Positions 2,834 to 37,340 of a stretch of 64,000 nucleotides of DNA are shown in pieces. The stretch lies in NCBI GenBank assembly GCA_964036045.1, contig OZ038378.1:7192001-7256000 (forward strand). Direction: 5' to 3'. The stretch comes from Eutreptiella sp. 'Long Island Sound 2002' (lineage: Eukaryota > Protista > Euglenida). The position numbers and the translations under genes were made by a program. A model generated the notes under the pieces. It saw only the letters and a list, made by a program, of their open reading frames with translations. It did no database searches and was not told the DNA's origin. The first letter of the stretch is position 1. Every line of letters begins with the position of its first letter.

Positions 2834-3069
2834 TAAGAGGTAGAAACCGGGTAGGACTACCCCCCCCCCCAACCCCCAAGCCTGCACGGCACCGGGGGAC
2901 CCCCACAGCGGCCGCAAGGGCTACGCGTGGGCGGCTCCTGGTTTCTGTCGCAGTGCAGAAAAGGTAGTTACCACGACCCCCCGAAAGCCCGCGGGGTCTG
3001 TGGTACCCCGTTCCCCCGGGCCCCACAAGGGACGCGCGGAGACGGGGTGGGCCCGTAGGGGTCGGGGGG

Positions 3070-5520: not shown

Positions 5521-5633
5521 GGGGGTCTGAAGGGCACTCCCAATTTGCGTTCTGTCCTGCCGCCCTCCATCGCGGAGGGAGGGGTGCGGGGTGCTGAGGT
5601 ACCCCCGTCTTTGCAGGACACAGAGAACGCAAA

Positions 5634-8600
5634 ATGAGTGGCCCTATCGACCTGGCTTTTCCCGGCGAACCCGACCACCGGGACTCCCCATTACTGGTTG
5701 CCATCCGGCAGGGGTCTTCGGCGGCGCACGGCCGCCTGAGGGATAGCTGGTCAGTGGCCAGTGACAAGGCGCTACTACAGGCCGCCGCGGATTCCCTCCC
5801 GGAGGTCGCCCGGGGGCGCCCGGAGGAGGTGCCGGACGCCCTACGCTGGGCCCGGCGCGTGGGGGTGATCACCGCCATTACGTCCATGGGGGTTATCTTG
5901 ACACCACGGGGGCTGTGCCTCACGGCCACGGTTACTGGGTCATACGACGCCCAGACTTTCGTCTCCCAGGACGTCCCCCTTATGGTGGAGGCTGGGGGAC
6001 CTCTGGTCGAGTACCTGGGGAATACGATACATCCCCGTCATCTGGATTTAGCCCGTCGGGTCATCTCGGGGTGCGCCCCTTTCGACACCCTACGGCTACG
6101 GAAGCGCTTGGCGCGGATCCTGAAGGTGGATGACGCCCTAGCCGAATCCGCCAGCGCACCGCAGGTGCACCACAGCACAGCCAACGCGGCTTTACGTCCA
6201 ATCGCTCCCTTTCTCTCCCCCGGCTGTCAAGCTGATTGGGGTCGTTTGGGGGCCAAGGACCAAGTGCGAATCCTTTGGGCTCTGCCCAAGCGGCCCACTG
6301 AGGTCTTACCTCACATCTCCGGCACGGGGAACGAGCTCTGGGCGGGATTAATGGTGTGGGCCTCCCGTCAAGTGGGGGGCGCCAGCGCGGGGGTACCGGT
6401 GACCCCGCTACCGAGGGGGTTACCTGAAATCCGGGATTGGCCCCTGGACGTTCTCCGGGGTGCCTTTGAGGCTTCCACCCTACCGATTACCACGGTGGAA
6501 GCACTGGGGGAGCTGCTAGGCGATATTACGCCATCTTGGGCCTCAGCCCCCGTTTTGGCGTTGCTTGCCTCTCGGGGTGCCGAAGCCCCTCTCAGCGCGG
6601 CGTCCTGGACGCGGGTATCCTCCCGCACCGGGGGTGGCACAGCCGCCGTGGACCTTCCCGTCCCGGCGGGCGCTAGGGCCTCGCCGGTTGTGGACGCAGA
6701 CGCAGCCGGGGATGACGATCCCACGCAACCGTACGTGAACGTGGACGGTGTAGATCCGACGGTCTCCGACCCTTGGCGGTTACTTGAGCCCTGTGCGGGG
6801 GCTACAACCGGCGCGACCCCTGCCGCGGGGGGCGACGCGGTCCCTCGAGGGGCACGTGACCCCGTGGGGGAATCCCCCTCCGACCCGACGGGGGTCAGCC
6901 GCGAAATAAAGTTTGGGGGCACCTCCATTTATGAGTTTGACGCGGAATCCCCAATAGGGGAGCGTGTGGAAGACTCTCCCACCCCACTGGCGATCCCTTG
7001 CCCTGCTGGCTCGGATCTCGGGGGCGGCTCCGGGCCGGCAGTTCGCCGCACCTCCCACGCGGTCGACAATCGGCTTGCGCCGTCCGACGGGGGCTGCGCT
7101 TTGGTGGCTGCCCATCGCGCGGCCCAATCGGGGTTTCCCCCGCCCATCTCTAATGCCCCTGGGGTCCTTGCCGGGGGCTTTGCCGGGGGCTCACACGCGG
7201 GGCCGGCACCTGCGACTCCGCAAGCGCCCGCGCCCGTGAGGGGCGGGGTGCATGTATCTCTTGGTGACGGGACTGGCCTCTTGTACCCACCGGGCACCAC
7301 GGCGGGCGAGCCCCGCCGGGGCGGCGTGCCCGACGTGAGCCCGGGTGAACGTTGGTGCCCGGAGTCCCCGGGGGCAGGGAGACGCCCCCCCATGGATGCG
7401 GGGCGCCGTCCCCCTCAGTGGGAGTCCCGTCTCCAGGACCTGGAGCGTGACCTAGAAGACGCCCAGGCCACGTGCCAGGCCCTGTCCTCCGAACAGGACC
7501 GCCGCCTGCAGGAGCTGCAGAGGGTCCGCGCGGACCTGCACCGCTCCGAGGGAGAGTTGGCGTCCATGCGGCGTGACCACGCCACGGTCAGCGGGGAACT
7601 GGTGCGGCAGCGCTCCCGCACGAGGTCCCTCGAGGAGGAGGGCAGCGGCCTCCGCCGACAGCTCGCTGACGCCCAGCGGGCGGCACGCGATGTCGCGGGG
7701 GCGGTGGACGAGCGCCTCAGCCGGCACCTCCCCGCCATCCTCGAGGCTGTGCAGATTGTTCGGGACGAACACATCTCACAGCCCGCGGTGGAGCGGGCGC
7801 TGCGGGGCTGGGTGCCCGCGGGGTAAGGGCCGCCCTCCACGGCGAACCCGAATTTCCGGGAGATCTGCGCGACTCTGGTCTGCGCAGCGGTCCTTCGGGT
7901 GGATCCCCCCCCGTCCCCGGAGCAGCTCTCTCGTCGCTTGCGGGTCCCGGTCTAGCCTGTCCTGCACTTCCCGACGGAGGCCGTAGGACAGGGACCGCTA
8001 TTGGGGATGTCCGCGGATACCCGCCCGATGGGCAGGGCCCCGGCACCGCACGAAGGGCCAGAGACCTCCCCGGTGGTCCGCTTAGCCGGAAAGCCCGGCG
8101 TCGAGGTCACCCCCGGGAACCGCTCCGGGGGGGACATCACTCCCACGACCACGGGTGCGGCCGGTGCGGCAGCCCCCACTCCGGGGCGGGACGAACTCTG
8201 CGCCCTCCTGGTGTACCTCAATGAGGTACCACCGGACTCGCAGACGGGGGAGGCCCAGAAGCTGCATCTGCACCTGGCTACCAGGCTGGACCTCCCCCCG
8301 GAGTTCCCCCAAAGCAACCTGCGGGCCCAGTACACGGCCCTGGGCAGGCTCCTGCCCACGCGGCCCGAGTTGGGCCACCTAGTCGGAGAGTTCGTCCGGG
8401 ACCGCCGGGCGGAGCCCTCCGGGTCTCAGACCCCGGTCCCTGACTCCCAGGGGGCGGCCAAGGTAGCGGCAGCGTCCCGGGCCAACCAGGCCGGAGGGAG
8501 CGGCAAGTCCCCTGGCAGGGGCAAAGGCGGGTCGGACCACGACACGTACTCCGTGGCCGTCATGGTCCGGTGGCGCGTCAACCCGCGCGACACCCCGGAG

Positions 8601-9605
8601 GCCATCTAACCCCTGTCCCCGGGGCGGTTGGGCATGGTCTTGAAGAAGGCCTTCGGGGACTTCCGTGTGTCCTACATCAAGGACGAAGGGCAGCTATGCC
8701 ACACGGAGGATGGAGGTTGGGCACTCGTGGGCGTGCGGCCCGAGGCTGCCTCCGCCTTGGAGGGGGGCGGGGGTGACGCCGACAAACAGTTCACCTACGA
8801 GTGGGCCAAGGCCAACAAACAACCGTATTCCGGCGGGCTGCTGCGGGCCCACCACGTGGAAAAGAGCAATGCTGTGCTCCAGCGGATGCGTAGTGGGGAC
8901 CTTATGGCAGGACCCAAAGGCTTGATCCGGGCTCGTGATCGGGACGGGGCCGGGGACGAGGGCCGGAAGCGGCGCCGGTCCCCCTCTTGGTCCCCCCCGC
9001 GGTCCTCCCATCGGTCGGAGGGAGACTACACCCCGCGACGGGGGAGCAGGTACCCCTCGCCGGAGGACGACTACCGTCGAGGAGGCTCGCGGCATACCCC
9101 CCAGTCGGTGGGGGGCCCGTGGGATGGGCGCTACGACTACCGTGCGCCGTCGCGGAGCGAGCAACCTCGCCAGCCACCACAATGGCTCCCCCGGGACGAC
9201 GGCTGGGGACAGGACTATCGGTCTTACGACCCCCCCACGAGTTACGGGGAACGCTCCCCCTACCCTCGGCCGGAGATGCACCCCATGGCTCCGCCTCATC
9301 AGGCGGCGGCGGCCAGCCCTCCGACCGCCGCCGTTTGGGGAGCGCCGCCCGTGGATCCCCGCTACCCGGGGGACGGCCGTGCGCCCCACTACGGGGCGGC
9401 CATGCCCCCGCAGGGGTTGGGCGTCCCGCAGGCGCCGTATCAGCACCAGCCATACGGACCACCGGCCCCGACCGCGGACGCGCCAGCGCCCCCCTCGGGG
9501 TACGCGGGGCCCTGGTACGGGGAAACAGTCCCAGCTCCCGCTGCCACAGCCCCGCCCGGCCCGGTTCACCCGGTGGCGCCCCCCACTTGGGGACCCAGCC
9601 CGTAA
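5634..9605 (+). CDS. LINE ORF1 reading frame (~1320 codons) broken by three in-frame stops; coiled coil, RRM-like and RS/Pro-rich segments
   Basis: Seen: ORFs 5634-7826, 8001-8609 and 8628-9605 share one frame, separated by TAA 7824, TAG 7953 and TAA 8607. Heptad-like LQDLERDLEDAQ...LRRQLADAQR at ~7420-7740. The RRM-like pattern YSVAVMVRW...VLKKAFGDFRV...GWALVGV...AASAL...FTYEWAK at ~8545-8815 is inference. Confidence 0.7.
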
Positions 9606-12600
9606 GGGGCGTTCCAGACGAACTCCCCCTCCCCGCGCCGGTCACGCTGGGGTGGGACGCCGGGGACGTGTTCTCTCCGGGGGCCGTGGCCCACGACCAG
9701 CTCAAGCTCCTGGCCCGGGACTCTGTGTGTCCGGGGCGCCCCTCTGCCCAGTGGGGAATTGTTCTCGGCATTTCTGGCGCCGTGTGCGGCGTGCGGGACG
9801 TGGCCACGGCGCTGGAGTGCTTACCGGGCCTCCACCCCGCGTTGGGGCACGTGTCCCTTTTCCAGGGAGACTGGCGCCTTCCCGCCATCCTTCAGCAGTG
9901 GGCGGCCCACATGGCCGTGTACCAAGTCTCGGGCGGCCATTCGGTGCAGGTGTACAGCGGTGGGGGGGGTGTCACCCACCCGCCCGGGGCTGAGGGATCC
10001 GTGACGTGGGTGCCCAGGTCCACGTACAGTCGCGGCCGGGTGGTGTTCAAAGCTGCGTCCAGCAGCTCCACCGCCTACGTGGCGGCCAACGTCGACGCGC
10101 GGGCACTGGGGCGGTATTTGCGGCGATCCACAGCGCTAGAGCTCCCCACCAAGGTCCGACAGGCCGTCCTCCGCCGCTTGGAACACACGACGGGTCCCAC
10201 TGGCCGGGGGGCGCTCGACGCCCTCTCTGGGGGCACCTCCAGCGGCCACCGCGGACTCGGGGACTTTCGGGCTATCACCCTGAACCTACAGAGAGGCCTA
10301 ATGGGCAAGATGCCAGCCCTGGGGTCTTGTCTGCGCGGGTGGGGTTGTCCGGATCTGGTGGGGCTGCAGGAAGTGGGCAAGATGCCCGCCAACATTGTGG
10401 CCCATGCCATGTACTGGGCCACATTCACCCCCGCGGCGCATCCGGCGGCCGGGGTGGGGCTGCTGGTGCGGTGGCATCCCACCTTTCGGGAGGTCTGGCG
10501 GGACATACACTCCAGCGGGCGCGGCGTTGCCCTGGAATACCACTGTCGGGGGGGACACATCCTGGCGGTGGTGGTGTATTTCCCGGCCGACCACGACTTG
10601 GACGTGGTGCGGAGCATCTTGTCGTGGGCCCTGGGCGTCATGGCCCCCCGTCGTGGGGTTTATACCCTGATGATGGGGGATCTCAACGCCAACCCGGGAT
10701 GGGCGACAGGCTTCCGGCAGGCCCCGGCTGCCCTCACCGTCCTTTGGGAGGAGTTTGTCCAGGACACTGGCCTGGTCCGCTGTTGCCCCACCTCCGAGGC
10801 GCCCACGTGGACCGACGGGCGGGGGTGCGTGGGGGTGATTGACCACGTGCTACAAGGCCCTGCCCCAAAGGAGGGACGTTTGTGGGTGGACGAGGCCTCC
10901 CCCTTCCCCTCTGACCACCGCCCGGTGGTGTGGGACGCCCGGGATTGCCAGGACCCTGAAGACAGGTCCCCGGTGCGGCTGCGCGCCAGGCACTTTCAGA
11001 TACGTGACCCAGGCATCACGGGCAGCTACCATGCGGCCTTGTCAGCGGCCCGCCGGGAGGAGGGTTTGCGACCCGATAGTCTGGCGGCCCTCTACGAGTA
11101 TTTCCTTTCCTCCACCATACGAGCGGTGGAGAGGGCCCATGGCCCCCCTCGTGAATTCGGGGAGCTCCCGGGGCGTGTGGACCAGGTCCACCGTCAGCTC
11201 CAGGCACACGCTAAGCGGTGCCCGCGGTGGTGGGAGTCACTGGACACGCTCAAAGAGCGTTTGGATCTCCGCCAGGACCTGGCGGAAGCCTGGGAGGTGG
11301 GGAATCTGCAGCGGTATCTCTCCCATCTCCCGGAGGTGGCCCCCTTCTCCAGACCATCCCGCGGGGCATTCCGCCACCTGTATGGGCCCGCTCGCACGCC
11401 GCCGGTCCAACCGCGGTTCTGCGCTCAAGTGGACGTGGCGCCGCGTGCCAGGGCCAAGGTGGCCCTGGACCAGGTGCGTCACCGACACCAGAAGACGCTG
11501 AGGGAGCTAACGCCGGGGGACGTCCGGGCCCTCACGGGTTGGATCACGCCCACACAGCTGCTGGGGTTGCCCACGGCTACGGTCCCCCACCTCCGCCGCA
11601 TACTTCAGCGCACCGGCAACACGGCCCCGGCTCGCGACCAGTTGCAGTACTGGATGTTGCGGGAGATGGACGACGACGGTCTTGCCATTGTGTGCGAGAT
11701 CGTCAACCGCTACATGCGGGGGGAGCGCCTGGAGGCCCTCTCGCACGGGGACCTCCACCTCCTCCCTAAGAAAGCTCCCCACGGCGTTGGGGCCAACGAC
11801 CGCCCACTCACCAACCTAGTCCTCCTGCGCAAGGTGGTGGGTCTGGTGGTGAAGGAAGAGGAGCAGCCCTGGCTTCGGGAGCACGGGTTCCTCCCCCCCA
11901 GCCAATTCGCCCTCTGGCCGGGAACGTCCATATGGGACTTCCTCAGGGTACTGCACGATTATTTCTGGTACCGCTGGGGCTCCGGGGGCGAAGCCTGGCC
12001 CGTCCTCGACGACGCCCGTCACGCTTTCGGTTCCCCAGACCACGTGTCCCGGGACTCTGTACACCGGGTGCTGGGTTACGGCCCGGAGCTGTGCCACCTG
12101 CACCGCTCCCTGGTGGAGGACATGCGCCTGGACATGGGCGGCACGGATGATGTCGACCATGCCGAGGGGTGGTTAGATGCAGGGTCCGGACAGGGCTGCC
12201 CTTTGTCCCCGCTAGATTACGCGCCCATGGGGGAGGTGAGGGCGAAGATGGTGTCCCGTGAATACCCCGGGGTGCTCACCCCAGCAGGCCTTTTACACAG
12301 TCTGGCCTGGGCCGACGATACGGTCTGGCTCGGGGGCTCCCCGGAGGATGTGTCCGCCATCGCCGGGGCCCTCCCCGCCGCAGAAGACGCGGTGGCTCTG
12401 GGATCCGACGTGTCGAAAATGCACGTCCTACGGACCTGGATGGACGGGCAGCGCGTACGGTACGGGGTTCCCTCGGTTCTGATGAACGGGGTTCGGCTGC
12501 CCGTGCCGTCAGAGAAGGATTACATCCGCTCCCTGGGGCGGCACGCCCTCCCACACACGTATCACAGGGAGGATTTCCGGAAGTTCATGATGGCGGCGCG

Positions 12601-14377
12601 GCGTGCTTCCGCGGTTATCCCCATCAAGTCCTTGCGGGCGCAATACCCCCCGGCCATGTACAACCCGAAGGCGGGCGGCATGGCGCGTTTCCAGGCCGGG
12701 GTTCGGCCCCCCCCGGTCCGGGTATGGCACCTCGCGGGCTACCCCGCCATCTCCGCCCTCCGGGCGATTGTGGGGGAAAACCTGCCAGCGCACCGTCTGC
12801 TCGGGCCTGTGCAAGCGGGGCTCTCCGGCATTCGCCCTCTGGGTCCGGACGTGTTGACCACGTTTGTGCTCAACTACGCCCGTCAGCGGAATCACCCCAA
12901 TCCCCTGACCCGGGCTTCCGCCCGGTGGGGGCACATGTGCGCCCTTTGGCGGTTCCACCCGGACATGCCCTGCATACACCAGGGCCTGGCGGACTGCGAT
13001 TGCCACCCCACGGACCATGACCGTTTCGTGCGCTATACGTGGCTCATGGAAATCCGGGTCTGGCCCGCTCCGGGGAGCCACGCCGTGGAGGTGAGCAAAC
13101 ACCCACTGGGCGCGGCGACGACCATCGACGAGGCGAATGACGGCCACGCGGCTTTGGCGGCCGGTTATCGGGACTGGTCCAGCACCCGCAGGGCGGGTTG
13201 GCCATCACGGTTTCGTGGGCCGGATACCCTCCCCCCGTGGCCCCGCTGCGTGCGATGGGCCCAGGAGGTACACTCCGAGGGGGTCACCCTGCAGAGCGTG
13301 CCTGCGGAGGCGGTTTTCGTGCAGGATGCCTCCTGGTATCCCAACCACACGGCCGGGGGCGGGCTGGTGGTGGCGGACCCCACGACAGGCTGGCACCGGA
13401 TCTACCGGATCCCCATCCTAGTCCACGTAGACGGGTCCTACCAGGCGGAACTCTACGTGGCCTGGGAGGTTTTGCGGGCACGGGGCGCCCACCGGGTGGT
13501 GTGGGGCACCCGAGGCCGGCAATGGTCCTTCCACGATAGCAAGGGCTATATAGACGCCGTCCAGTCCCGCAACCCCGGATCCTCCCCGCTGTCGGACGAC
13601 TTGCTGCGGGCGTGCCGGGGTTTGCTGTCCGAGGGGTTCAGTGCGCCTCAGCACCTGTACTCCCACAGAGTCGGCACCTTCCTGGACACCCTGCTGGACA
13701 TAGCCGACGGGGAAGCCAAGAAGCAGGCTTCCGGGGCCCGCCCCGAGGTGGGGTGGATCCGGGGGCTTCAAACACCCCAGGTCTGTTTCACCCACAACGA
13801 CGTCCAGGTGCACAACCTGGACCGTCTGGTCGAGACGTCGTCGCGCCGTCTGTGGGATCTTCATATGGAGGCCCCCGAGCGCGGGGAGCGCCAATCCCTG
13901 GGGGTTTACTCCGCCGTTACTGAGCGGGGTTTAATCCGGTGGGGGGCACACCTCCGCACGATGGCACGCCGGGACGGGCTGGGGTTCGCCGGGGACGAAC
14001 GCCCCTGCCCCGCTTGTGGCCAGACAGTGGGAGCGCGCCATTGGGTTTCCACTTGCCCGTGGCGCCACCTCTTTCGGTTGGCGATCCACACGCAACTGCA
14101 CATACGCCTGGACACGCTCTGTGCACGTTGGCAGCGCCGCGCAGTGTCCCCATGGGGGATTGTGGTCCTGTACGGGCCCGATGCCTTCGCCCTCAGCGTG
14201 GGCTCACCGGGGGACGACGACCCCCATCCCGGGGCGGGGGTACGCACGTTGTATATCGATCCCTACGGGGAATGGGAACCTGGGGACGTACGGTACCTGT
14301 ATGACAGGGGATTAGTGGTGGGCGCAGCCCAGCGGGTGCTGGCCACGGTCGTCAACTTTTGGGACGCCCTGGACTGA
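8987..14377 (+). CDS. LINE ORF2: APE endonuclease, reverse transcriptase, RNase H, CCHC knuckle (true start probably at or after ~9606; first ATG after ORF1 is 9911)
   Basis: Seen: APE motifs ITLNLQ, GLQE, MGDLNA, PTW, IDHVL, SDHRPV (~10265-10935). RT motifs RPLTN, GSGQGCPLSP, WADD (12308-12319). RNase H motifs FVQDAS, QAELY, FHDSK, IAD (~13310-13720). CPAC-x7-H-x4-C at ~14003-14060. Confidence 0.95.
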   Translation: MVPPAVLPSVGGRLHPATGEQVPLAGGRLPSRRLAAYPPVGGGPVGWALRLPCAVAERATSPATTMAPPGRRLGTGLSVLRPPHELRGTLPLPSAGDAPHGSASSGGGGQPSDRRRLGSAARGSPLPGGRPCAPLRGGHAPAGVGRPAGAVSAPAIRTTGPDRGRASAPLGVRGALVRGNSPSSRCHSPARPGSPGGAPHLGTQPVRGVPDELPLPAPVTLGWDAGDVFSPGAVAHDQLKLLARDSVCPGRPSAQWGIVLGISGAVCGVRDVATALECLPGLHPALGHVSLFQGDWRLPAILQQWAAHMAVYQVSGGHSVQVYSGGGGVTHPPGAEGSVTWVPRSTYSRGRVVFKAASSSSTAYVAANVDARALGRYLRRSTALELPTKVRQAVLRRLEHTTGPTGRGALDALSGGTSSGHRGLGDFRAITLNLQRGLMGKMPALGSCLRGWGCPDLVGLQEVGKMPANIVAHAMYWATFTPAAHPAAGVGLLVRWHPTFREVWRDIHSSGRGVALEYHCRGGHILAVVVYFPADHDLDVVRSILSWALGVMAPRRGVYTLMMGDLNANPGWATGFRQAPAALTVLWEEFVQDTGLVRCCPTSEAPTWTDGRGCVGVIDHVLQGPAPKEGRLWVDEASPFPSDHRPVVWDARDCQDPEDRSPVRLRARHFQIRDPGITGSYHAALSAARREEGLRPDSLAALYEYFLSSTIRAVERAHGPPREFGELPGRVDQVHRQLQAHAKRCPRWWESLDTLKERLDLRQDLAEAWEVGNLQRYLSHLPEVAPFSRPSRGAFRHLYGPARTPPVQPRFCAQVDVAPRARAKVALDQVRHRHQKTLRELTPGDVRALTGWITPTQLLGLPTATVPHLRRILQRTGNTAPARDQLQYWMLREMDDDGLAIVCEIVNRYMRGERLEALSHGDLHLLPKKAPHGVGANDRPLTNLVLLRKVVGLVVKEEEQPWLREHGFLPPSQFALWPGTSIWDFLRVLHDYFWYRWGSGGEAWPVLDDARHAFGSPDHVSRDSVHRVLGYGPELCHLHRSLVEDMRLDMGGTDDVDHAEGWLDAGSGQGCPLSPLDYAPMGEVRAKMVSREYPGVLTPAGLLHSLAWADDTVWLGGSPEDVSAIAGALPAAEDAVALGSDVSKMHVLRTWMDGQRVRYGVPSVLMNGVRLPVPSEKDYIRSLGRHALPHTYHREDFRKFMMAARRASAVIPIKSLRAQYPPAMYNPKAGGMARFQAGVRPPPVRVWHLAGYPAISALRAIVGENLPAHRLLGPVQAGLSGIRPLGPDVLTTFVLNYARQRNHPNPLTRASARWGHMCALWRFHPDMPCIHQGLADCDCHPTDHDRFVRYTWLMEIRVWPAPGSHAVEVSKHPLGAATTIDEANDGHAALAAGYRDWSSTRRAGWPSRFRGPDTLPPWPRCVRWAQEVHSEGVTLQSVPAEAVFVQDASWYPNHTAGGGLVVADPTTGWHRIYRIPILVHVDGSYQAELYVAWEVLRARGAHRVVWGTRGRQWSFHDSKGYIDAVQSRNPGSSPLSDDLLRACRGLLSEGFSAPQHLYSHRVGTFLDTLLDIADGEAKKQASGARPEVGWIRGLQTPQVCFTHNDVQVHNLDRLVETSSRRLWDLHMEAPERGERQSLGVYSAVTERGLIRWGAHLRTMARRDGLGFAGDERPCPACGQTVGARHWVSTCPWRHLFRLAIHTQLHIRLDTLCARWQRRAVSPWGIVVLYGPDAFALSVGSPGDDDPHPGAGVRTLYIDPYGEWEPGDVRYLYDRGLVVGAAQRVLATVVNFWDALD

Positions 14378-14386
14378 AAGCGGGAG

Positions 14387-14929
14387 ATGCCCATCGTCCC
14401 GGCAGCCAGGGAGGTCTATTACCGGGACGAGGACGGTCACACGTGGGACCTGGCGACCCGGGTACCAGCACGCTTCGACCCGACCTCCCACGAGTGGGGA
14501 AGCCGGCCGGCGATGGCCGGGCTGTGGCCGGGGGCGAGTCTGCTGTGGCCCGTGTGCGAGCGCGGACAGCTGTCTGCCGTTCTGCCCCCCGGGCAGGACT
14601 GGCCCCCACGCTGGGGCGGGACCCAGAGGGTCCTCTGGTATTCGGACCGGCCTCTGCCCAAAAGCTTGGGGCGTTGGCCCCGGGAGGTCCGCGATGCGGA
14701 TTTGGTCATCATTGATGGGCCGGGCGGCCTGCCGCCGCGGCGGTTAGCCTGGCTCCTTTCGTACGGGCCACCCTCCCGTTATATGGGCTTGTACGAGGCG
14801 CGGGAGGCACATGACCGTCGCCAAGTGCGCCGGTTGCGCGATATGCTGATGGCCACCTTGCGCATGGCAGGTTATCAGCCCAGGGTCTCTTACCAGTTGC
14901 TGGGGTTGGCTTTGCGGCAACCCCGGTGA
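14387..14929 (+). CDS. 180-aa orphan ORF in frame with ORF2, four codons after its TGA
   Basis: Seen: GAC TGA AAG CGG GAG ATG at 14372-14389; the sequence has globular-protein composition. No family recognised. Confidence 0.5.
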   Translation: MPIVPAAREVYYRDEDGHTWDLATRVPARFDPTSHEWGSRPAMAGLWPGASLLWPVCERGQLSAVLPPGQDWPPRWGGTQRVLWYSDRPLPKSLGRWPREVRDADLVIIDGPGGLPPRRLAWLLSYGPPSRYMGLYEAREAHDRRQVRRLRDMLMATLRMAGYQPRVSYQLLGLALRQPR

Positions 14930-17900
14930 TCCCCTCGCTACGCCTGGACCCAGGTGTGTTCCAGGGGTGCAAACCGGGGGGACGGGGTCAGGGACAGGGT
15001 CGGCAGGTTGGTGGAGGGCCCCGCGCACGGGCGCCTTCGGCAGAAGTGCCGTGCGCGGGGGAGGGTGGGGGGATCGGGCCACGGACCAAGCCCCCGTGTT
15101 CCGCCGGCTAAACGCCGCCCAGTCGGTAGTACCTGGCGGCTAAGGGCCCACACCCGTGAGACTGCGTCCCCCTTCCCTTGGGGGGGTGGTGGAACGTGCC
15201 GGAAGTGGAGCCGGCGCTCCGCCTCGCCCCCTGTTCCGTGCCCCTGGGTGGTGATCCGGCTACGTGTAGGGCAGGGGTGCATGCGCGTGGTGCGGACCGG
15301 GGGACAAGAGGAGGAGACGAAGAGGAGAGCCGCCGCCATGATGCTTAGCCGGACGGGTTGGGATGTAACCCCCCTCCCGGTCGCGCGCCAGACCGTGGAG
15401 GGCCGGCGGGCACCATGGGGATGTGCCGCGGGGGCGCCCTACCGGGGGACCGCATCTCCTCCTCCTCCTGCGTGTGCCACTGTGCACACTGTCTAGTGTG
15501 TAAACTGTAACATTCCGGATGCTGTGCGGTGTGCAGAGTGCACTGTGTTTGAAGAATTTGTCCTCAGCAATGTATAAAAAGCAGCATGCACTGTGCTGTT
15601 CACAATGTTCAACGTGTGCAATGCAGTTTGGAACAGCTGGATATTGTGCAGCGTACAAGGTGCGTGTTGTGCAGTGAGCGGAGTGCGCTTTGTGCCTTGT
15701 GCAATGTTCCCTTCCCCACCAGCCCAGCCCCAATACCTCGTGTTGATTAGGGTGTGGGTTGCAACGCCCCCTTGTAGTAGAGCACCCTCAAAATTGGACA
15801 ATTGGGATTTCTGGGCCAGTTCCCAGCAAAAGTGCACGTGGCTTCCCAAAACTGTCAACACTGGCAAAAAAAAATGGTGCTAATCGGGGCATGCCAGATA
15901 GGGTGTACGTGGTGCTATTTGCATTGAAACCATTGTGGATGATGCAAAATGGGTTAGGGTACTGTCTGGTCGCTTTTCTAGCCAAATAGCGGCCTCAATG
16001 GACCCCCTTTTGGAACCAGGGTGAACAACACGGTCGAGAAGCGCTGGAAAGGTGCAATATGTGATGTGTTTGTATCGTTGTTGGGGGTTTACGCTTTCGT
16101 TGTGCAGTACACGTATCATGGTCATCCCAGTACGTGGGCGCGCTAGCCGAGCACAGAGTTTCTTGTTGGGCAATCAGGTTCGCCATCAAGTTGGGTTGCA
16201 AGTGGGCGATGGTGTCCGATGAGTCGGAGGTAGTGGCATGGTGGGTGCCTAGGCTATGGGGCACAATGAAATGGTGTAGACAGCAACAGCTTTTGTGTTG
16301 ACTTGTCTTGCAATCGGGCATTGTTGTGCATGTGGCCTGGGACTCAAGAAGCACCAGCAAACCGGCCTAGCAGGCTTGCTACCTGTCTATCGTCCATGGA
16401 CAAATTCACAGTTTTGGCTCATCGTCGTTGGGGTACGCAATTGAGTTACTACCCCTTGTCATGGGTTGTGAGCTGTTTGTGGGCCTGATTGGAAGCAGAA
16501 ACGGGCCTGAGTACCAGAGTTGGATTTCAAAATTACCTACGCGCTTGCCACTTGGACACTTTTGTTCACATATTCCTTTCATTCTCCTCTCCACGCATTG
16601 TGCCAATTGTCTACGCCCACCTCTCCCCAAATACCTGCATTGCCTACTACCGGGGGGTGTTTTTGCATTTAAATGACTCACCTCACCTCAACGGCGTTGA
16701 AGGCTCGGTTTGCACTCTTGTGTTGCAAGTCAGCGAGAGCTTGGGGGTCTTTGCAGCTCACACGCCGTGGAAGAAGTGGTGAATGCCGTGCTGAATATTG
16801 ATGAAGAGTTGGAAAGCTATGCAGTCACAGTGTATGGACTGGATGAGGCGGATTATTTTATTTTTTAAGGCCAGTCAGCGCACAAGCCTACTGAGCGGAC
16901 AAAAGGAGCACAGAGAGGAAAAAGGAAAAGGAGAGGATGCCACTGTACGAGAAGATGGGTACTCTCAGGAAGGGGACTCTGGTCAGTGCGTTGTTAACGA
17001 TGCAAAACAAAACACACTCGCACCCATACCCATACCCATACCCACACACATTTCGACACAGTCAGAACCATCACCGTTACCACTGAACACCTTGTCAGCG
17101 TTTACTGCCCCAGGCGTCTGCAAATGTAGTGCAAGCCACAATGCCTCAGACCAGTCCCCCGTTTGGCGAAGTCTTGACTCATATAAGGCGGCTGGTATGA
17201 TTTGAAGGCCTGGGCCTGGGCGAGCATGCGACAGGGCTGTGTTGGAGTGGTGTCAATGTACAGCGGTGTGCGAGGGATGAGGGATTGGCCAGATGCATTG
17301 TGTGGCGTACCCCAGGGTATGAATGGCACGTGTGGCTTTTTGTGAAATCATTTTGGGAGACAAAATTATTCCCCAAATGAATTTTTCGAATTTGACCCCT
17401 CAGACCCCCCCCCCCCAACCACCAAGGCCTTGTGCCAACCCCCCCCCCCCCCTCACAGCTGGGTGCCGTTTTTTTTGGTGGGGGGGGGGGGCTCAAAAAT
17501 TGGTTGGCCTATTGCGGCAACTGCACGTCGATGCAGACCTAGGTCCCATTGAAATTTTTTCTTCTATGTGAACCCCCCAACCAATGGCTTGGATCCCGGG
17601 GTTCTATCTCTGGGTACCCAGGATCGGTCCCCCTGTGGGGCTCCACCGGTGAGCCATTGGCCGTTTTTCATTTGGTGACAATGGCAGCAGACATAAACCC
17701 AGTGCGGGGCATATAGCTCCATGAGGCCACCTGTTGGTGTACATCGGCCCCTAAAATTCCACAATGCAGCCGCTCAATGGCACCTTAAGAGGGGGGGCCT
17801 CACGACTCCCTCTGCTCCTCGAAGTGCCTTGCCGAAGGACAATAGAATTTTCGTCTTTTCTGGCCATTCGTCATCGAGGATTGTCACAGTTCATTAGACT

Positions 17901-24889: not shown

Positions 24890-25424
<535 letters not shown>

Positions 25425-25729
25425 CGAAGGCGCTGTTACCAAAGGGCAAAGGCCGGGATGTCTACCCACGGGTAAAGGTAAACGGGCTGGGCTGTGTGTG
25501 TTGTGTGCGCGCTGTGTGTAAGTGTGTTGTGGCATAGCCGGACCAGTGCACTCTCGCACTTGGCCGACACTGCCTTGCCGACGCCTGCGCGCAGTCACAC
25601 GGGGTCTCATTTGCCCACTGCACCCTGCGTGCCGCGCTGCACCACCAGTGCCTTCTCTGTGGTGCCGCATTGCTTGGCGCTCGGCACCACACTGCCTGTG
25701 TGTGCCCTGCTGCTCCGTTGTTGTGGGCA

Positions 25730-26290
25730 GGGGGCAGTGGGCAGTGTTACGCACCGCCTGGGGGCTGTGGGCAATGGAAATAGCGCTTCGCACTGCCTCA
25801 CTGCCTGGGGGCGGTGGGCAGTGCAACTCCTGCAATCCGCTGCCTCACTGCCCGGGGGCAGTGGGCAGTGCAACTCCTGCAATGCACTGCCTCAGTGCCC
25901 TGGGGCAGTGGGCAGTGCATCTCCTGCAACGCACCGCCTCACTGCCTGGGGGCAGTGGAGGGCGCAACTCCCGCAATGCACTGCCGCACTGCCTGGGGGC
26001 AGTGGGCAGTGCAACTCCTGCAATGCACTGCCTCACTGCCCTGGGGCAGTGGGCAGTGGAACTCCTGCAATGCACTGCCTCACTGCCTGGGGGCAGCGGA
26101 CAGTGCAACTCCTGCAATGCACTGTCTCACTGCCCTGGGGCAGTGGGCAGTGGAACTTCTGCAATGCACTGCCTCACTGCCTGGGGGCAGTGGGCAGTGC
26201 AACTCCTGCAATGCACTGTCTCACTGCCCCGGGGCAGTGGGCAGTGCAACTCCTGCAATGCACGACCTCACTGCCTGGGCGCAGTGGCCG
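25730..26290. repeat. ~47-bp minisatellite, ~12 units, each an imperfect palindrome
   Basis: Seen: ggggcagtgggcagtgcaactcctgcaatgcactgcctcactgcct; aactcc recurs at 25825 and 25872. Confidence 0.9.
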
Positions 26291-29200
26291 CACTCCTGCG
26301 GGAAGAGGCAGCGAACATGGCAACAGGGCTGGGGGCGAACTGTGTCACGTAGGCACTGGTCACACCGTTCACGGCGAATGGGTCGGCAATGTGGGATGCC
26401 CAGTTCTCAACAGGGCCCTCACCAGTCACGATGGCCCGCACGTAGTAGCCGAACATCGAGAACATAGCAAGACGGCCGTTCTTGATCTCCTTCACCTTCA
26501 ACTCAGCGAACGTGTCAGGGTCGTCAGCCAATCCCAGAGGATCGAAGGCTTCACCAGGGTGCAGCTTATCCAATCCCTCACCCAATGGGCCAGACTCAGC
26601 TGCACGGTAAGCCTCAACGGCTCCCACCAACAGAACCTGGCAGGCCAGGATGGCCAGGATGGATTGGGCGTGGACCAGCTGAGGCTCACCCAAGTAGTTG
26701 ATACCACCCTCACTGAAGATGGCGGCACCAGCCTTGAACCAGACAGCGGAGTCCCCGGCGAAGGAGATGCCTCCTCCGTACTTGGCAAGGAACTCTGGGG
26801 TGATGCACCCCAAAGTGCCCAACATGGCCCAACGGGCATGGATCAGCTCGGCCTCACGGTACTTCTCCAAAGTGGTGGGGTCAGCACCCAGTCCAGCAGT
26901 GTCCCAACCGTAATCACCAGGCAGCTCACCAGTCAGGTATGCAGGCACGTTCTGGGTGTAGGGGCCCAACCACAGGTTCCGGTCAGGGCCGTACCAGAGG
27001 TCAAGAGGGGTGACGGACTTCTGGAAACTTGCGGCCAGACACAGCGAACATGGCAACAGGGCTGGGGGCGAACTGCGTCACGTAGGCACTGGTCAAACCG
27101 TTCACGGCGAATGGGTCGGCAATGTGGGATGCCCAGTTCTCAACAGGGCCCTCACCAGTCACGATGGCCTGCACGTAGTAGCCGAACATCGAGAACATGG
27201 CAAGACGGCCGTGCTTGATCTCCTTCACCTTCAACTCAGCGAACGTGTCAGGGTCGTCAGCCAATCCCAGAGGATCGAAAGCTTCACCAGGGTGCAGCAG
27301 ATCCAAATCCTCACCCAGAGGACCTCCGTTCACACGGTAAGCCTCAACGGCACCCATCAGCACAACCTGGCAGGCCAGGATGGCAAGGATGGACTGGGCG
27401 TGCACCAAATGGTCGCTGCCAAGGTAGTCCAGACCGCCCTCAGAGAAGATCTGAGCACCAGCCTTGAACCAAACGGACTCGCCGAAGGGCACACCGGCGT
27501 ACTTGGCCAACAGCTCAGGGGTCAAGCAGCCCAAAGTACCCAACATGGCCCAACGAGCGTGGATCAGCTCAGCCTCGCGGTAGGCAGCGAAGGTGGTAGG
27601 GTCGGCGGCAAGACCAGCAGTGTCCCAGCCGTAGTCACCAGGGTACTCACCAGTCAGGTATGCAGGGGTGGCACCCTCGGAGAACGGGCCCAACCACTTG
27701 TTGCGGTCGGGGCCGTACCAGGCAGAGGAGGGGACACTGGCCGTACTCCTGCGGGAAGAGGCAGCGAACATGGCAACAGGGCTGGGGGCGAACTGTGCAG
27801 CGTACACAGCGGTCAAACCGTTCACGGCGAATGGGTCGGCAATGTGGGATGCCCAGTTCTCAACAGGGCCCTCACCAGTCTCGATGGCCTGCACGTAGTA
27901 GCCGAACATCGAGAACATGGCAAGACGGCCGTTCTTGATCTCCTTCACCTTCAACTCAGCGAACGTGTCAGGGTCGCCAGCCAATCCCAGAGGATCGAAG
28001 GCTTCACCAGGGTGCAGCTTATCCAATCCCTCACCCAATGGGCCAGACTCAGCTGCACGGTAAGCCTCAACGGCTCCCACCAACAGAACCTGGCAGGCCA
28101 GGATGGCCAGGATGGATTGGGCGTGGACCAGCTGAGGCTCACCCAAGTAGTTGATACCACCCTCACTGAAGATGGCGGCACCAGCCTTGAACCAGACAGC
28201 GGAGTCCCCGGCGAAGGAGATGCCTCCTCCGTACTTGGCAAGGAACTCTGGGGTGATGCACCCCAAAGTGCCCAACATGGCCCAACGGGCATGGATCAGC
28301 TCGGCCTCACGGTACTTCTCCAAAGTGGTGGGGTCAGCACCCAGTCCAGCAGTGTCCCAACCGTAATCACCAGGCAGCTCACCAGTCAGGTATGCAGGCA
28401 CGTTCTGGGTGTAGGGGCCCAACCACAGGTTCCGGTCAGGGCCGTACCAGAGGTCAAGAGGGGTGACGGACTTCTGGAACTTGCGGCCAGACACAGCGAA
28501 CATGGCAACAGGGCTGGGGGCGAACTGCGTCACGTAGGCACTGGTCAAACCGTTCACGGCGAATGGGTCGGCAATGTGGGATGCCCAGTTCTCAACAGGG
28601 CCCTCACCAGTCACGATGGCCTGCACGTAGTAGTCGAACATCGAGAACATGGCAAGACGGCCGTTCTTGATCTCCGTCACCTTCAACTCAGCGAACGTGT
28701 CAGGGTCGTCAGCCAATCCCAGAGGATCGAAAGCTTCACCAGGGTGCAGCAAATCCAAATCCTCACCCAGAGGACCTCCGTTCACACGGTAAGCCTCAAC
28801 GGCACCCATCAGCACAACCTGGCAGGCCAGGATGGCAAGGATGGACTGGGCGTGCACCAAGTTGGAGCTGCCAAGGTAGTCCAGACCGCCCTCAGAGAAG
28901 ATCGAGCACCAGCCTTGAACCACACAGGCTCGCCAAAGGACACACCGGCGTACTTGGCCAACAGCTCAGGGGTCAAGCAGCCCAAAGTACCCAACATGGC
29001 CCAACGAGCGTGGATCAGCTCAGCCTCACGGTAGGCAGCGAAGGTGGTTGGGTCGGCGGCAAGACCAGCAGTGTCCCAGCCGTAGTCACCAGGGTACTCA
29101 CCAGTCAGGTAGTCAGGGGTGGAGGCACCAGAGAATGGTCCCAACCACTTGTTCCCCTCAGGGCCATACCAGGCCGCCAGAGTGTCAGAGACACGGCCAG

Positions 29201-30530
29201 ACGCAGCGAACATGGCAACAGGGCTGGGGGCGAACTGTGCAGCGTACACAGCGGTCAAACCGTTCACGGCGAATGGGTCGGCAATGTGGGATGCCCAGTT
29301 CTCAACAGGGCCCTCACCAGTCTCGATGGCCCGCACGTAGTAGCCGAACATCGAGAACATGGCAAGACGGCCGTGCTTGATCTCCTTCACCTTCAACTCA
29401 GCGAACGTGTCAGGGTCGTAAGCCAATCCCAGAGGATCGAAGGCTTCACCAGGGTGCAGCTTATCCAATCCCTCACCCAATGGGCCAGACTCAGCTGCAC
29501 GGTAAGCCTCAACGGCTCCCACCAACAGAACCTGGCAGGCCAGGATGGCCAGGATGGATTGGGCGTGGACCAGCTGAGGCTCACCCAAGTAGTTGATACC
29601 ACCCTCACTGAAGATGGCGGCACCAGCCTTGAACCAGACAGCGGAGTCCCCGGCGAAGGAGATGCCTCCTCCGTACTTGGCAAGGAACTCTGGGGTGATG
29701 CACCCCAAAGTGCCCAACATGGCCCAACGGGCATGGATCAGCTCGGCCTCACGGTACTTCTCCAAAGTGGTAGGGTCAGCACCCAGTCCAGCAGTGTCCC
29801 AACCGTAATCACCAGGCAGCTCACCAGTCAGGTATGCAGGCACGTTCTGGGTGTAGGGGCCCAACCACAGGTTCCGGTCAGGGCCGTACTAGAGGTCAAG
29901 AGGGGTGACGGACTTCTGGAAACTTGCGGCCAGACACAGCGAACATGGCAACAGGGCTGGGGGCGAACTGCGTCACGTAGGCACTGGTCAAACCGTTCAC
30001 GGCGAATGGGTCGGCAATGTGGGATGCCCAGTTCTCAACAGGGCCCTCACCAGTCACGATGGCCTGCACGTAGTAGCCGAACATCGAGAACATGGCAAGA
30101 CGGCCGTTCTTGATATCCTCTACCCTCAACTCAGCGAACGTGTCAGGGTCGTCAGCCAATCCCAGAGGATCGAAAGCTTCACCAGGGTGCAGCAGATCCA
30201 AATCCTCACCCAGAGGACCTCCGTTCACACGGTAAGCCTCAACGGCACCCATCAGCACAACCTGGCAGGCCAGGATGGCAAGGATGGACTGGGCGTGCAC
30301 CAAATGGTCGCTGCCAAGGTAGTCCAGACCGCCCTCAGAGAAGATCTGAGCACCAGCCTTGAACCAAACGGACTCGCCGAAGGGCACACCGGCGTACTTG
30401 GCCAACAGCTCAGGGGTCAAGCAGCCCAAAGTACCCAACATGGCCCAACGAGCGTGGATCAGCTCAGCCTCGCGGTAGGCAGCGAAGGTGGTAGGGTCGG
30501 CGGCAAGACCAGCAGTGTCCCAGCCGTAGT
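26290..30530 (-). pseudogene. Lhcbm: Intronless fragment of an LHCII (Lhcbm) polyprotein: six units (A partial, B, A', B, A, B) joined by short linkers; disabled
   Basis: Seen: repeated [32 protein letters not shown] and EIKNGRLAM motifs with linkers SPVAMFA(A/V)S(S/G)R. Lesions: TGG>TAG at ~29890, +1 frameshifts at 29920-29922 and 27025-27027, and a 1-nt deletion at ~28903. No transit peptide and no introns. Established: euglenids encode LHC as linker-joined polyproteins. Confidence 0.92.
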
Positions 30531-30672
30531 CTGCCCAGGGGGCGTCCGGAGTCTCCTGCCAGGCCAGAGGGGGGTCTTCTTCTTCAGGGAACCGGGCGCA
30601 CCGGCCCGGGGGGGACGGGGTGTCCTGCCCAGGGGGTGTTCGGAGTCTCCTGCCAGGCCAATGGGGGGCCAT
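29896..30672 (-). CDS. Chimeric ORF (258 aa): ~47 repeat-encoded residues fused in frame to most of one LHCII unit
   Basis: Seen: MAPHWPG...ETPDAPWA|DYGWDTAG..., terminated by the +1 frameshift after the linker. Expression unknown. Confidence 0.3.
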
Positions 30673-31968
30673 CTTCTTTAGGGAACCGGGCGCACCGGCC
30701 CGGGGGGGACGGGGAGTCCTGCCCAGGGGGTGTTCGGAGTCTCCTGCCAGGCCAATGGGGGGTCATCTTCTTCAGGGAACCGGGCGCACCGGCCCGGGGG
30801 GGACGGGGAGTCCTGCCCAGGGGGTGTTCGGAGTCTCCTGCCAGGCCAATGGGGGGCCATCTTCTTCAGGGAACCGGGCGCACCGGCCCGGGGGGGACAG
30901 GGAGTCCTGCCCAGGGGGTGTTCGGAGTCTCCTGCCAGGCCAATGGGGGGTCATCTTCTTCAGGGAACCGGGCGCACCGGCCCGGGGGGGACAGGGAGTC
31001 CTGCCCAGGGGGTGTTCGGAGTCTCCTGCCAGGCCAAATGGGGGGCCATCTTCTTTAGGGAACCAGGCGCACCGGCCCGGGGGGGACGGGGAGTCCTGCC
31101 CAGGGGGTGTTCGGAGTCTCCTGCCAGGCCAATGGGGGGTCATCTTCTTCAGGGAACCGGGCGCACCGGCCTAGGGGGGACGGGGAGTCCTGCCCAGGGG
31201 GTGTTCGGAGTCTCCTGCCAGGCCAATGGGGGGCCATCTTCTTCAGGGAACCGGGCGCACCGGCCCGGGGGGGACAGGGAGTCCTGCCCAGGGGGTGTTC
31301 GGAGTCTCCTGCCAGGCCAATGGGGGGTCATCTTCTTCAGGGAACCGGGCGCACCGGCCCGGGGGGGACAGGGAGTCTTGCCCAGGGGGTGTTCGGAGTC
31401 TCCTGCCAGGCCAAATGGGGGGCCATCTTCTTTAGGGAACCGGGCGCACCGGCCCGGGGGGGACAGGGAGTCCTGCCCAGGGGGTGTTCGGAGTCTCCTG
31501 CCAGGCCAATGGGGGGTCATCTTCTTCAGGGAACCGGGCGCACCGGCCTGGGGGGGACGGGGAGTCCTGCCCAGGGGGTGTTCGGAGTCTCCTGCCAGGC
31601 CAATGGGGGGCCATCTTCTTTAGGGAACCGGGCGCACCGGCCCGGGGGGGACAGGGAGTCCTGCCCAGGGGGTGTTCGGAGTCTCCTGTCAGGCTAATGG
31701 GGGGCCATCTTCTTTAGAGAACCGGGCGCACCGGCCCGGGGGGGGCGGGGAGTCCTGCCCAGGGGGTGTTCGGAGTCTGCTGCCAGGCCAATGGGGGGCC
31801 ATCTTCTTCAGGGAACCGGGCGCACCGGCCCGGGGGGGACGGGGAGTCCTGCCCAGGGGGTGTTCGGAGTCTCCTGCCAGGCCAAGGGGGGGCCATCTTC
31901 TTTAGGGAACCGGGCGCACCGGCCTGGGGGGGACGGGGAGCCCAGCCCAGGGGGTGTTCGGAGTCTCC
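30531..31968 (-). repeat. Tandem array of ~15 GC-rich 94-bp monomers
   Basis: Seen: + strand unit gggtcatcttcttcagggaaccgggcgcaccggcccggggggggacggggagtcctgcccagggggtgttcggagtctcctgccaggccaatgggg. ORF starts recur at 94-bp spacing (30584, 30678, 30772). Confidence 0.95.
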
Positions 31969-32415
31969 CAGCAGCAGCAGGCAAGTAAGCAGGCAGTACC
32001 GGGGGTCATAACCCCGGGGTAACAGTATCTGGGACTCAACGTGAGTCCTCTTAACCAGGAACAACCCCAAACACCGCCGGGGCTTAACTCCCGAACGTAA
32101 CGGTGTTTGGGGCCCCCGTGGGCCTTATGAGCCCACGGAGTGTACTGAGGCGTGGCTACCAGCTGGACTGTGGCCTGCCATACCCATTTCTGGGCTCGCC
32201 TCAGTACGGCCGGTCGAGTCCGGCTCTGGGGGTTGCGCACTAAATTGGCCCCGGGGGGGGGGCCATTTACCCTGTTAAGCATTAGTTACGGCAGTAGGCA
32301 CTATTCATTACGTTAGGGAATTACTCAGCGCTGTTGTTTACCCCGCAGACATGCCCCTTCCAGTGGTGCGCTCACCTTTGGGGCTGCCTTTGGGGGATCG
32401 GGGGCTGTTACCCCT
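31969..32415 (-). ncRNA. Structured RNA module, copy B (inverted homolog of 2385-2833)
   Basis: Seen: the reverse complement aligns colinearly with copy A from gggtaa..gcccc..cccccaaaggcagccccaaagg through tgcctgctgctgct. Confidence 0.6.
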
Positions 32416-33347
32416 CCCGGACGCCCTCCCTGGTGTTGGCGCCGGGGTGGTGGCCGGGGGGCCTTATACCGTACCTAAAGGATGTCGGATACCGATACCA
32501 GGGTGTCCAACCGGACGGGGACAGGGGCGGCGTCTCCGGGCTTTGTCATCTGGCCCACAATCGACTGACCCACTGGACTGCTCCACTCCAGTCCTCAGGC
32601 CAGCTTTATATCCCTCCTCGCACCCTCGCACATGTTACAGGGCGGGGGGTCGTTGTCGGGGCCCCCCGCGCATGTCCGCGCCACCGGCCATCCCCTCCTC
32701 CCAGGCACCGCGCCTCTGCTAGGGCGGGGGCCCCTCACATGCACCCTTCAGGGCCCTTTCCACCTGCACACCTGGACGCTTGCCATGAAGACCCCGTATT
32801 GGAGGCTCCTCGTCGGCGCGCCCGGGTCCAGATTGTTCACGCGGCCGGCCGCCGATGCGGGGCCCTGGAGGCGCGCCGCACAGGCGCTGCCAGCCTGCGA
32901 GAGGGGCAAGGGCGGGAGAAGGGGGTGGGGGGAGGGGCAGTGGGCAGGGGAGGCGGCACGGAGTGGCTGCGGGAGGTAGTGCATGGGGGGCACCGAGAGC
33001 TGCATGGGGGTGTGTGGGACGGAGTTGGGGCAGAGGGCCCTGTGGGTGGGGCAAAGGCGCGGGGGGGGCGCATGTCCGGGCTCCTGCGTGGGCTGGCGCG
33101 TGGGCGGGCGCGTAGGGGAAGAGAGGAGGGGGAGGCTTGGTCAGCCGTCCTCTACGGAGGGTCGCTGACCGTTCCCAGGGCCAAGGCGGCCGGTACTAGG
33201 GGCCGCGGGGTCCCTGGGGATGGTGCTTGGCACTGGGACGTGCGCGCACCCGACACTGTTAGTACACCGCCTATTGGCAGTGCCCGGGCCCTGTCGTCGG
33301 GGGCTTCGCACCCGGCACCCAGCCCGTGAGTAGAGCTGGGGAGTACT

Positions 33348-37340
<3,993 letters not shown>

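Follow-up and report, generated by a model that had tools for sequence, protein, structure and literature searches.

In a stretch of 64,000 nucleotides (nt) from the euglenid Eutreptiella sp. 'Long Island Sound 2002' (assembly GCA_964036045.1, contig OZ038378.1, positions 7,192,001 to 7,256,000 of the forward strand; hereafter the window), I found an intronless array of light-harvesting complex (LHC) units that lies, on the minus strand, between the 5′ and 3′ parts of an abundant repeat family. The whole unit of about 8 kb is probably a decayed copy of a composite, non-autonomous derivative of a long interspersed nuclear element (LINE), in which an LHC complementary DNA (cDNA) was captured once and which was amplified recently to at least 55 copies. 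An earlier note, made from the window alone, had proposed that a template switch fused an LHC mRNA to the RNA of a retroelement. Two parts of that proposal stand: the LHC part appears to be derived from RNA, as indicated by a plastid-targeting presequence that is split at another locus (on C21), and it is fused to a retroelement leader. The fusion is not a local one-off, since at least 55 copies exist. Template switching by reverse transcriptase is a plausible but unproven mechanism of the joins. The note also missed the downstream half, where the LHC array is joined to a 47-bp array, a 3′ region and a (CA)53 tail of the same family. The finding is more interesting as a family than as a single locus.

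The element in the window

All coordinates without a contig name are positions in the window, and the parts of the element are read on the minus strand. The element starts at a (CA)n run (33551-33350) and ends in the (CA)53 tail (25423-25318). Its parts are as follows, with the evidence in brackets.

33350-33551, no strand: (CA)n/(GT)n microsatellite, the target or the tail of a preceding copy (TRF, GT × 101.5; directly upstream of the 5′ end of the element)
32481-33349, minus: 5′ region of the repeat family, non-coding, ~870 bp (95-99% identity in 40 scored copies)
31969-32480, minus: structured leader module, 512 bp (99-100% identical in 40 scored copies; fold; count of a 53-mer)
30531-31968, minus: 94-bp monomer array, 15.3 copies, 95% matches (TRF, pattern scan, list of open reading frames)
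30525-30536, minus: 5′ junction between monomer and LHC, type J1, blunt or with 1 nt of overlap (direct sequence reading)
26285-30530, minus: six LHCII (Lhcbm-type) units, intronless, the first cut at DYGWDT, with four disabling lesions (three-frame translation, PF00504, PDB matches)
26268-26300, minus: 3′ junction between the LHC inter-unit linker and the 47-bp array, crossover near 26285/26284 (genome count of a 56-mer)
25790-26287, minus: 47-bp tandem array, 10.6 copies, part of the 3′ untranslated region (UTR) of the element (TRF)
25424-25789, minus: unique 3′ region of the family, 366 bp (counts of a terminal 58-mer and a boundary 60-mer)
25318-25423, minus: (CA)53 tail, the end of the element (TRF, TG × 53; homology to ten other copies ends here)

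Most of the local anatomy described in the earlier note was borne out. The structured module is real by the measure of folding, as 477 nt of it fold at -221.5 kcal/mol with a z score of -4.86 against shuffled sequences; an Rfam scan of 25000-34000, which includes the module, matched no family. The roughly 15 monomers correspond to the 15.3 copies listed above, and a scan with the 94-bp pattern gave 14 matches against 0 expected by chance. The direct join into the middle of an LHC unit is found at 30531/30530, which reads ...ccccctgggcag/actacggctgg..., and the first unit begins at DYGWDT. As claimed, the last monomers supply an ATG (at 30672) in the same frame as the first LHC unit; the resulting open reading frame (ORF) covers 29896-30672 and has 258 aa. 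The stop codon TGA at 26268-26270 falls within repeat sequence. The note had seen no element ORFs, and a Pfam search of the ORFs of the element likewise gave nothing above the cut-off besides the LHC domain, with no domain in the ORFs of the 5′ region. Nor was presequence homology found anywhere in the window, in agreement with the claim that no LHC N-terminus exists elsewhere in it.

The LHC units belong to the Chloroa_b-bind family PF00504 (383.5 bits against a cut-off of 22.3, E 1.6e-115, three stretches in 560 aa). They are closest to LHCII/LhcbM chains, and LHCII chains in the PDB match at E values down to 1e-113. Homology to LHC proteins within the window is limited to 26297-30531. The note had described this block as 4.2 kb of uninterrupted polyprotein coding sequence, which proved wrong. 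Three-frame translation revealed that the frame is broken four times, by three frameshifts and one in-frame stop codon:

29920-29922, minus: +1 frameshift, TTT for TT
29889-29891, minus: in-frame TAG
between 28904 and 28903, minus: -1 frameshift
27025-27027, minus: +1 frameshift, TTT for TT

In the ORF list, the block is accordingly split into pieces of 258, 351, 640 and 262 aa, the longest open piece being 640 aa. All four lesions are private to the window copy among the 24 copies compared, and this copy is among the more damaged ones. The base missing at 28903 is present in contigs of other sequencing runs. The two +1 changes are identical (TTT for TT in ...GCAAGTTCCAG...) and lie 2,895 bp apart, and the change was found in 0 of the 23 other copies. 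A recent internal duplication was considered as the source of the pair; the blocks around the two changes differ at 22 of 1,337 positions, and are no nearer to each other than other pairs of blocks. The pair could also be due to gene conversion inside the array, to repeated slippage or to a polishing or homopolymer error of the assembly. A functional Lhcbm gene would be expected to have an open frame through all units and a plastid-targeting presequence, and the window copy has neither. It is without plausible protein function and is a dead member of its family.

The structured module has a relative in the same window. Its sequence (31970-32440, minus) is 87.6% identical over 476 bp to positions 2360-2834 (plus), which lie in the leader of a separate LINE at 1492-15468 with monomers of 103 bp. 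This block is the sole part common to the two elements. The resemblance suggests that leader modules may be exchanged between LINE families.

Copies and junctions across the genome

The genome to which the window belongs (2.28 Gb) was searched with the 4.2-kb LHC block. Near-full-length, gap-free matches were found on many contigs; after merging of overlaps, 24 distinct loci were examined, each with 1.5-kb flanks. In addition, short exact patterns were counted with up to 3 mismatches allowed, and the reversed control patterns all gave 0. The order of parts is identical in 24 of 24 loci, with 5 to 12 LHC units per locus. A monomer array stands before the LHC units in 21 of the 24 and a 47-bp array behind them in 23; the module at one end, and the 3′ region with its (CA)n tail at the other, are seen wherever the flank reaches. 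Copies of the composite are scattered over more than 20 contigs. The 56-mer that spans the junction of LHC and 47-bp array has 55 copies in the genome, 38 of them perfect. The terminal 58-mer of the 3′ region has 749 copies and the 53-mer of the module 300. Thus, the two ends belong to an abundant family whose 3′ ends outnumber its 5′ ends.

The LHC-bearing form is a subfamily of this family. A 60-mer at the boundary of the 47-bp array and the 3′ region gave 66 matches, and the LHC copies share one variant of it; the non-LHC copies, which coincide with 3′ ends counted by the 58-mer, differ from that variant at 3 of the 60 positions. With a 3′ UTR variant of its own, the LHC form is a separate lineage.

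The termini are sharp. Ten loci have sequence that continues past the tail, and in each of them the match to the window breaks off between 25319 and 25420; the flanks beyond the element ends are unrelated in the ten loci tested. At the other end, the start of the 5′ region lies within a (CA)n run or directly behind it in 40 of 40 copies scored in the genome, and the 443 bases upstream of the 5′ (CA)n run of the window were matched by none of these 40. Some copies are arranged head to tail via (CA)n. The excess of 3′ ends together with 5′-truncated copies is the pattern of a LINE family, and a 3′ end common to many copies with a simple-repeat tail is typical of elements without long terminal repeats (non-LTR elements). 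In four non-LHC cases, the module and the 3′ end lie on the same strand 21.6-26.5 kb apart. Thus, the full-length relatives are probably very long. Long family members were placed, all on the minus strand, at C1:61807345-61831600, C1:107427817-107452400, C2:17101922-17129300 and C5:24889102-24911500.

The two junctions of the LHC array differ in their behaviour. The 3′ junction lies in the inter-unit linker (...MFAASSRRS...) and is identical in all 55 copies. Read by eye, GCAGGAGT is common to the linker and the 47-bp unit, and so is CCA at the crossover near 26285/26284. The 3′ join thus arose where the two sequences are locally similar. By contrast, the 5′ junction is of at least 13 types in the 24 loci, which vary in both the monomer position and the position within the LHC unit. 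Type J1, the type of the window, is present with an identical 40-mer at three loci (the window on C1, C19:3796733 and C25:25224811). Type J2 is found at 11 loci and a presequence-type 5′ join at five or six; one copy is joined upstream of the module, and two are cut off against an unrelated CA-rich flank. Several of the 5′ join types are multi-copy themselves. By-eye reading of the overlaps gave 0-1 nt at the 5′ joins J1, J2 and J3 and about 3 nt at the 3′ junction. The leader, the LHC units and the LINE 3′ UTR lie on one strand, are connected by short-overlap joins and are followed by a (CA)n tail, as is expected for a chimera made by template switching. Comparison of the copies shows that the LHC cargo was joined to the 3′ part once, and the internal 5′ join was remade repeatedly within one lineage.

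The internal composition of the arrays was also compared. When 173 units were typed into classes A to E, most arrays were found to be suffixes of a CBABACBA core in which further units were gained or lost; the window has the string (B)ABABA. In a tree built from the last two units, the branching is star-like and the median tip length 0.0054. The constant 3′ end, the variable 5′ extent, the sharp ends, the dispersal and the star-like tree are together the mark of a copying process begun at the 3′ end, of which target-primed reverse transcription is an example.

The earlier note had named misassembly of the join as something that would overturn its reading. Misassembly was rejected, since the identical junction 40-mer occurs at three dispersed loci and the architecture in 24.

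A few loci deserve separate mention. C25:6289052-6308549 holds two LHC-bearing elements head to tail, and the downstream one, with 11 units, is the longest array seen that retains a remnant of the presequence. C21:19361452-19372280 (minus) is without any 47-bp array, so that LHC is joined straight to the 3′ region at the equivalent of window position 25798. The same locus has repeated frameshifted pairs of units (BEABEA...), and thus a duplication seems to have followed the damage. At C1:145830812-145837309, positions 150-700 upstream of the LHC copy hold the end of a related element; its 3′ terminus resembles that of the family of the LHC element, and its tail consists of (CACCT)n/(CACCA)n where that family has (CA)n. 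Sister families with different microsatellite tails may exist. Finally, in two LHC-bearing copies the module and the first LHC unit are about 12 kb apart, against 0.4-1.5 kb in the others. They were located by match coordinates:

C3:44896214-44915557, plus: long LHC-bearing copy
C3:149721358-149737932, minus: long LHC-bearing copy

Origin and fate of the LHC cargo

The longest copy (on C25) does not begin with its first mature unit: upstream of this unit stand about 250 more bases, whose translation resembles the distal portion of a presequence for plastid targeting, with a hydrophobic stretch, a mature start at ...AWYGPDR and a TGA inside the presequence. A query of 268 bases from this presequence stretch gave six contiguous matches in retro-copies. 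At C21:26930790-26933113, the same stretch is split in three (query 1-57, 54-191 and 188-268, with 98-100% identity). The pieces lie at 26930790-846, 26930961-1098 and 26933033-113, separated by gaps of 114 and 1,934 bp, and 4 nt overlap at both breaks. According to PMC2920757, which cites Muchhal and Schwartzbach 1994, introns of Euglena gracilis Lhcbm1 lack consensus borders and are flanked by direct repeats of 2-5 bp. Thus, the overlaps at C21:26.93 Mb fit intron borders, and this locus is likely to be the intron-bearing parent or a close paralogue. The check suggested in the earlier note, to locate the source Lhcbm gene and compare its introns, is in this way answered by match coordinates for the presequence region. 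Taken together, it is supported that the LHC cargo is spliced and RNA-derived: intron loss is shown for the presequence region and would follow from the literature for the mature units (PMC2920757).

The cargo differs from a processed retrocopy in that the LHC part ends in an inter-unit linker and not in a 3′ UTR and poly(A) of its own mRNA. The euglenid 5′ spliced leader was not seen, since no examined copy reaches the 5′ end of the mRNA and the longest starts within the presequence.

How have the copies fared since? Of 151 complete units, 121 are free of stops and frameshifts; 7 of the 24 copies are open throughout, one of them over 12 units and 8.6 kb. The singleton changes comprise 121 synonymous, 326 nonsynonymous and 13 stop changes, for which the neutral expectation is 27, 70 and 3.4%, respectively. 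The private divergence is about 0.4%. With so little divergence and neutral singleton changes, the openness of the units reflects youth and not constraint. To judge from these patterns, the copies are young and evolve like pseudogenes without purifying selection. The window copy and most others are without a plastid-targeting presequence, and no copy seen has a complete one. The earlier suggestion of a route for the expansion of LHC polyproteins finds no support, as the private substitutions are neutral and presequences are mostly lacking.

Read evidence consists of short contigs of public runs, which cannot show transcription, start sites or strand. In two RNA-type runs, the depth of the LHC units is in the thousands and that of the monomers 0-127; in one of these runs, the 47-bp array has a depth of 5-8. 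Two breaks in matching contigs were noticed. At 27767, a contig of an RNA run matches an LHC unit to the MFA motif and continues with 255 letters unlike the window (sense start TTAAGCC...). This contig may contain the C-terminus and 3′ UTR that a real LHC mRNA naturally has, and it differs from the 3′ junction of the element. At 30063, contigs in two runs of unrecorded type match an LHC unit from 30063 upward and have 120-255 unrelated letters below it (CATAAAGACAGACAGG...). In the same two runs, the monomer and 47-bp arrays are covered very deeply. The break at 30063 may mark a border of exon and intron within a mature unit of a genuine Lhcbm gene.

Explanations, known systems and significance

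The explanation that I regard as probable would run as follows. Both ends of the element belong to the abundant LINE-like family that sits in (CA)n microsatellites, and in place of the coding interior of this family it would hold an intron-free stretch from inside an Lhcbm (LHCII) polyprotein mRNA. A composite RNA would be made from the leader, and the enzyme of the family would reverse-transcribe it in trans at (CA)n targets, beginning with the 3′ end that they share. Both the 5′-truncated copies and the many joins between monomers and LHC units would then be due to the reverse transcriptase stopping early or jumping from the LHC array to the monomer array.

Several points weigh against this explanation. 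The joins could equally be explained by microhomology or end-joining deletions at the DNA level. Both flanks are (CA)n, and a target-site duplication is not recognisable within a microsatellite. A reverse transcriptase between the monomers and the 3′ end of the long copies is inferred from coordinates alone, and among the 150 matches listed of 61,141 candidates in a genome-wide RVT_1 search there were other families only and none in the four long intervals. The likely parent locus is known from match coordinates alone, and for the presequence region only. Among the contig pieces listed, which are short, none bridges either junction, and so no chimeric transcript was seen. The two long copies on C3 are unexplained; they could be either capture intermediates that keep the LINE interior or nested insertions.

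These long copies, together with joins that are blunt or have 1-3 nt of overlap, speak for the rival that deserves most thought, a capture at the DNA level in two steps. Here, an LHC cDNA would have been end-joined into the interior of a full-length LINE, and later deletions between monomers and LHC would have given the short forms. The present data fit jumping of the reverse transcriptase alike, and the long copies could hold nested insertions; I consider this course of events rather unlikely. A purely DNA-level spread, in which a satellite-flanked fragment of an LHC gene was multiplied by segmental duplication or ectopic recombination, is improbable. Homology ends exactly at (CA)n runs, the termini are common to a family of 300-749 copies with 5′ truncation, the cargo lacks the intervening sequences of the parent, and the tree is star-like; these facts outweigh the variation in unit number, which is of the kind that unequal crossing-over can produce, and the two LHC-bearing units in tandem on C25.

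It may also be asked whether these are working genes, that is, intronless Lhcbm polyprotein retrogenes that are functional and expressed from the repeat leader, of which the window copy is merely a dead one. I give this little credence. Fully open copies such as that of 12 units and 8.6 kb, the in-frame ATG in the monomers and the part of the presequence retained in five or six copies could be read in its favour, but open frames are expected at about 0.4% divergence, and the private substitutions are neutral and include 13 new stops. Moreover, no copy was seen with a complete presequence (the C25 copy starts within it and has a TGA there), and RNA-type contigs contain almost no monomer sequence. 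Least credible is a single local event, in which one template switch between LHC mRNA and element RNA made this locus only. Although the local anatomy with its direct join and lack of introns fits such a chimera, the idea is refuted by at least 55 copies that share the 3′ junction on more than 20 contigs with different flanks, by the exact 5′ junction at three loci and by the family-type ends on both sides. The probable explanation remains a composite LINE derivative that captured an LHC cDNA once.

Known systems share single traits with this element. The SVA_F1 (MAST2-SVA) subfamily of hominid SVA elements, reportedly described in 2009 by Damert, by Hancks and by Bantysh and Buzdin, is likewise a non-autonomous, LINE-mobilised composite with internal tandem repeats that acquired spliced host sequence once and reached tens of copies. 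Its cargo, however, is a short piece of a 5′ exon obtained via splicing or 5′ transduction, whereas the euglenid element has 4-9 kb of internal coding sequence between a LINE leader and a LINE 3′ UTR, and a (CA)n tail in place of poly(A). Chimeric retrogenes made by template switching of L1 (U6-L1 and mRNA-L1), said to have been reported by Buzdin in 2002 and 2003 and by Gilbert in 2005, also fuse different RNAs in the same orientation by blunt or short-overlap joins, with a LINE 3′ part and no introns. Those are single-copy dead ends, in contrast to the LHC chimera, which retained the LINE ends on either side, went on moving until there were at least 55 copies and had its 5′ join remade many times. 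In trypanosomes, which also belong to Euglenozoa, RIME is a non-autonomous derivative of ingi. Like the LHC element, it keeps the 5′ and 3′ ends of an autonomous non-LTR partner and is without ORFs; it is, however, a plain deletion derivative with no host cargo, monomer arrays or microsatellite tail.

The microsatellite-specific LINEs Mino, with (AC)n, Kibi, Koshi and Waldo, reportedly described by Kojima and Fujiwara in 2004, resemble the LHC element in having the same simple repeat on both flanks, here (CA)n, and in lying head to tail through the repeat; for the LHC element, target specificity is judged from the flanks alone. Short tandem monomers in a LINE-type leader recall the monomeric 5′ UTR of mouse L1, whose monomers are about 200 bp. 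Here they are 94 bp and are preceded by a structured RNA block, and they may serve as a promoter.

With respect to the host gene, Lhcbm polyprotein genes have been described (Koziol and Durnford 2008; Muchhal and Schwartzbach 1994, both as cited in PMC2920757). The genes of E. gracilis encode the same protein units, arranged with linkers in the same way, and also have several types of unit in a row; they differ in having nonconventional introns and a full tripartite presequence, neither of which the frameshifted window copy has. A literature search found no paper that reports LHC retro-copies or an LHC-carrying element in Euglena.

Could the elements give something back to the host? It is a long shot that those with long open frames (up to 8.6 kb) and a partial presequence constitute a mobile reservoir for the Lhcbm polyprotein family. 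Gene conversion, or landing behind a spliced-leader acceptor and a targeting exon, would then feed units or genes into Lhcbm. If true, this would help explain the 'multifarious' and concerted evolution of Lhcbm.

In the genome paper, 32.7% of the genome is classed as unknown repeats (PMC11252322). The results mean that, between its leader and its 3′ end, a euglenid LINE-type family can acquire several kilobases of spliced coding sequence from its host, and that the cargo-bearing family keeps moving, reaches at least 55 copies and remakes its internal joins. It offers a dated, multi-copy natural series for studying the jumping of reverse transcriptase and the 3′-end needs of a microsatellite-associated LINE. 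For the host gene family, at least several hundred near-identical intronless LHC units, many of them open, will inflate LHC gene counts and will confuse the annotation, read mapping and expression estimates of a gene family that is among the most studied in this alga.

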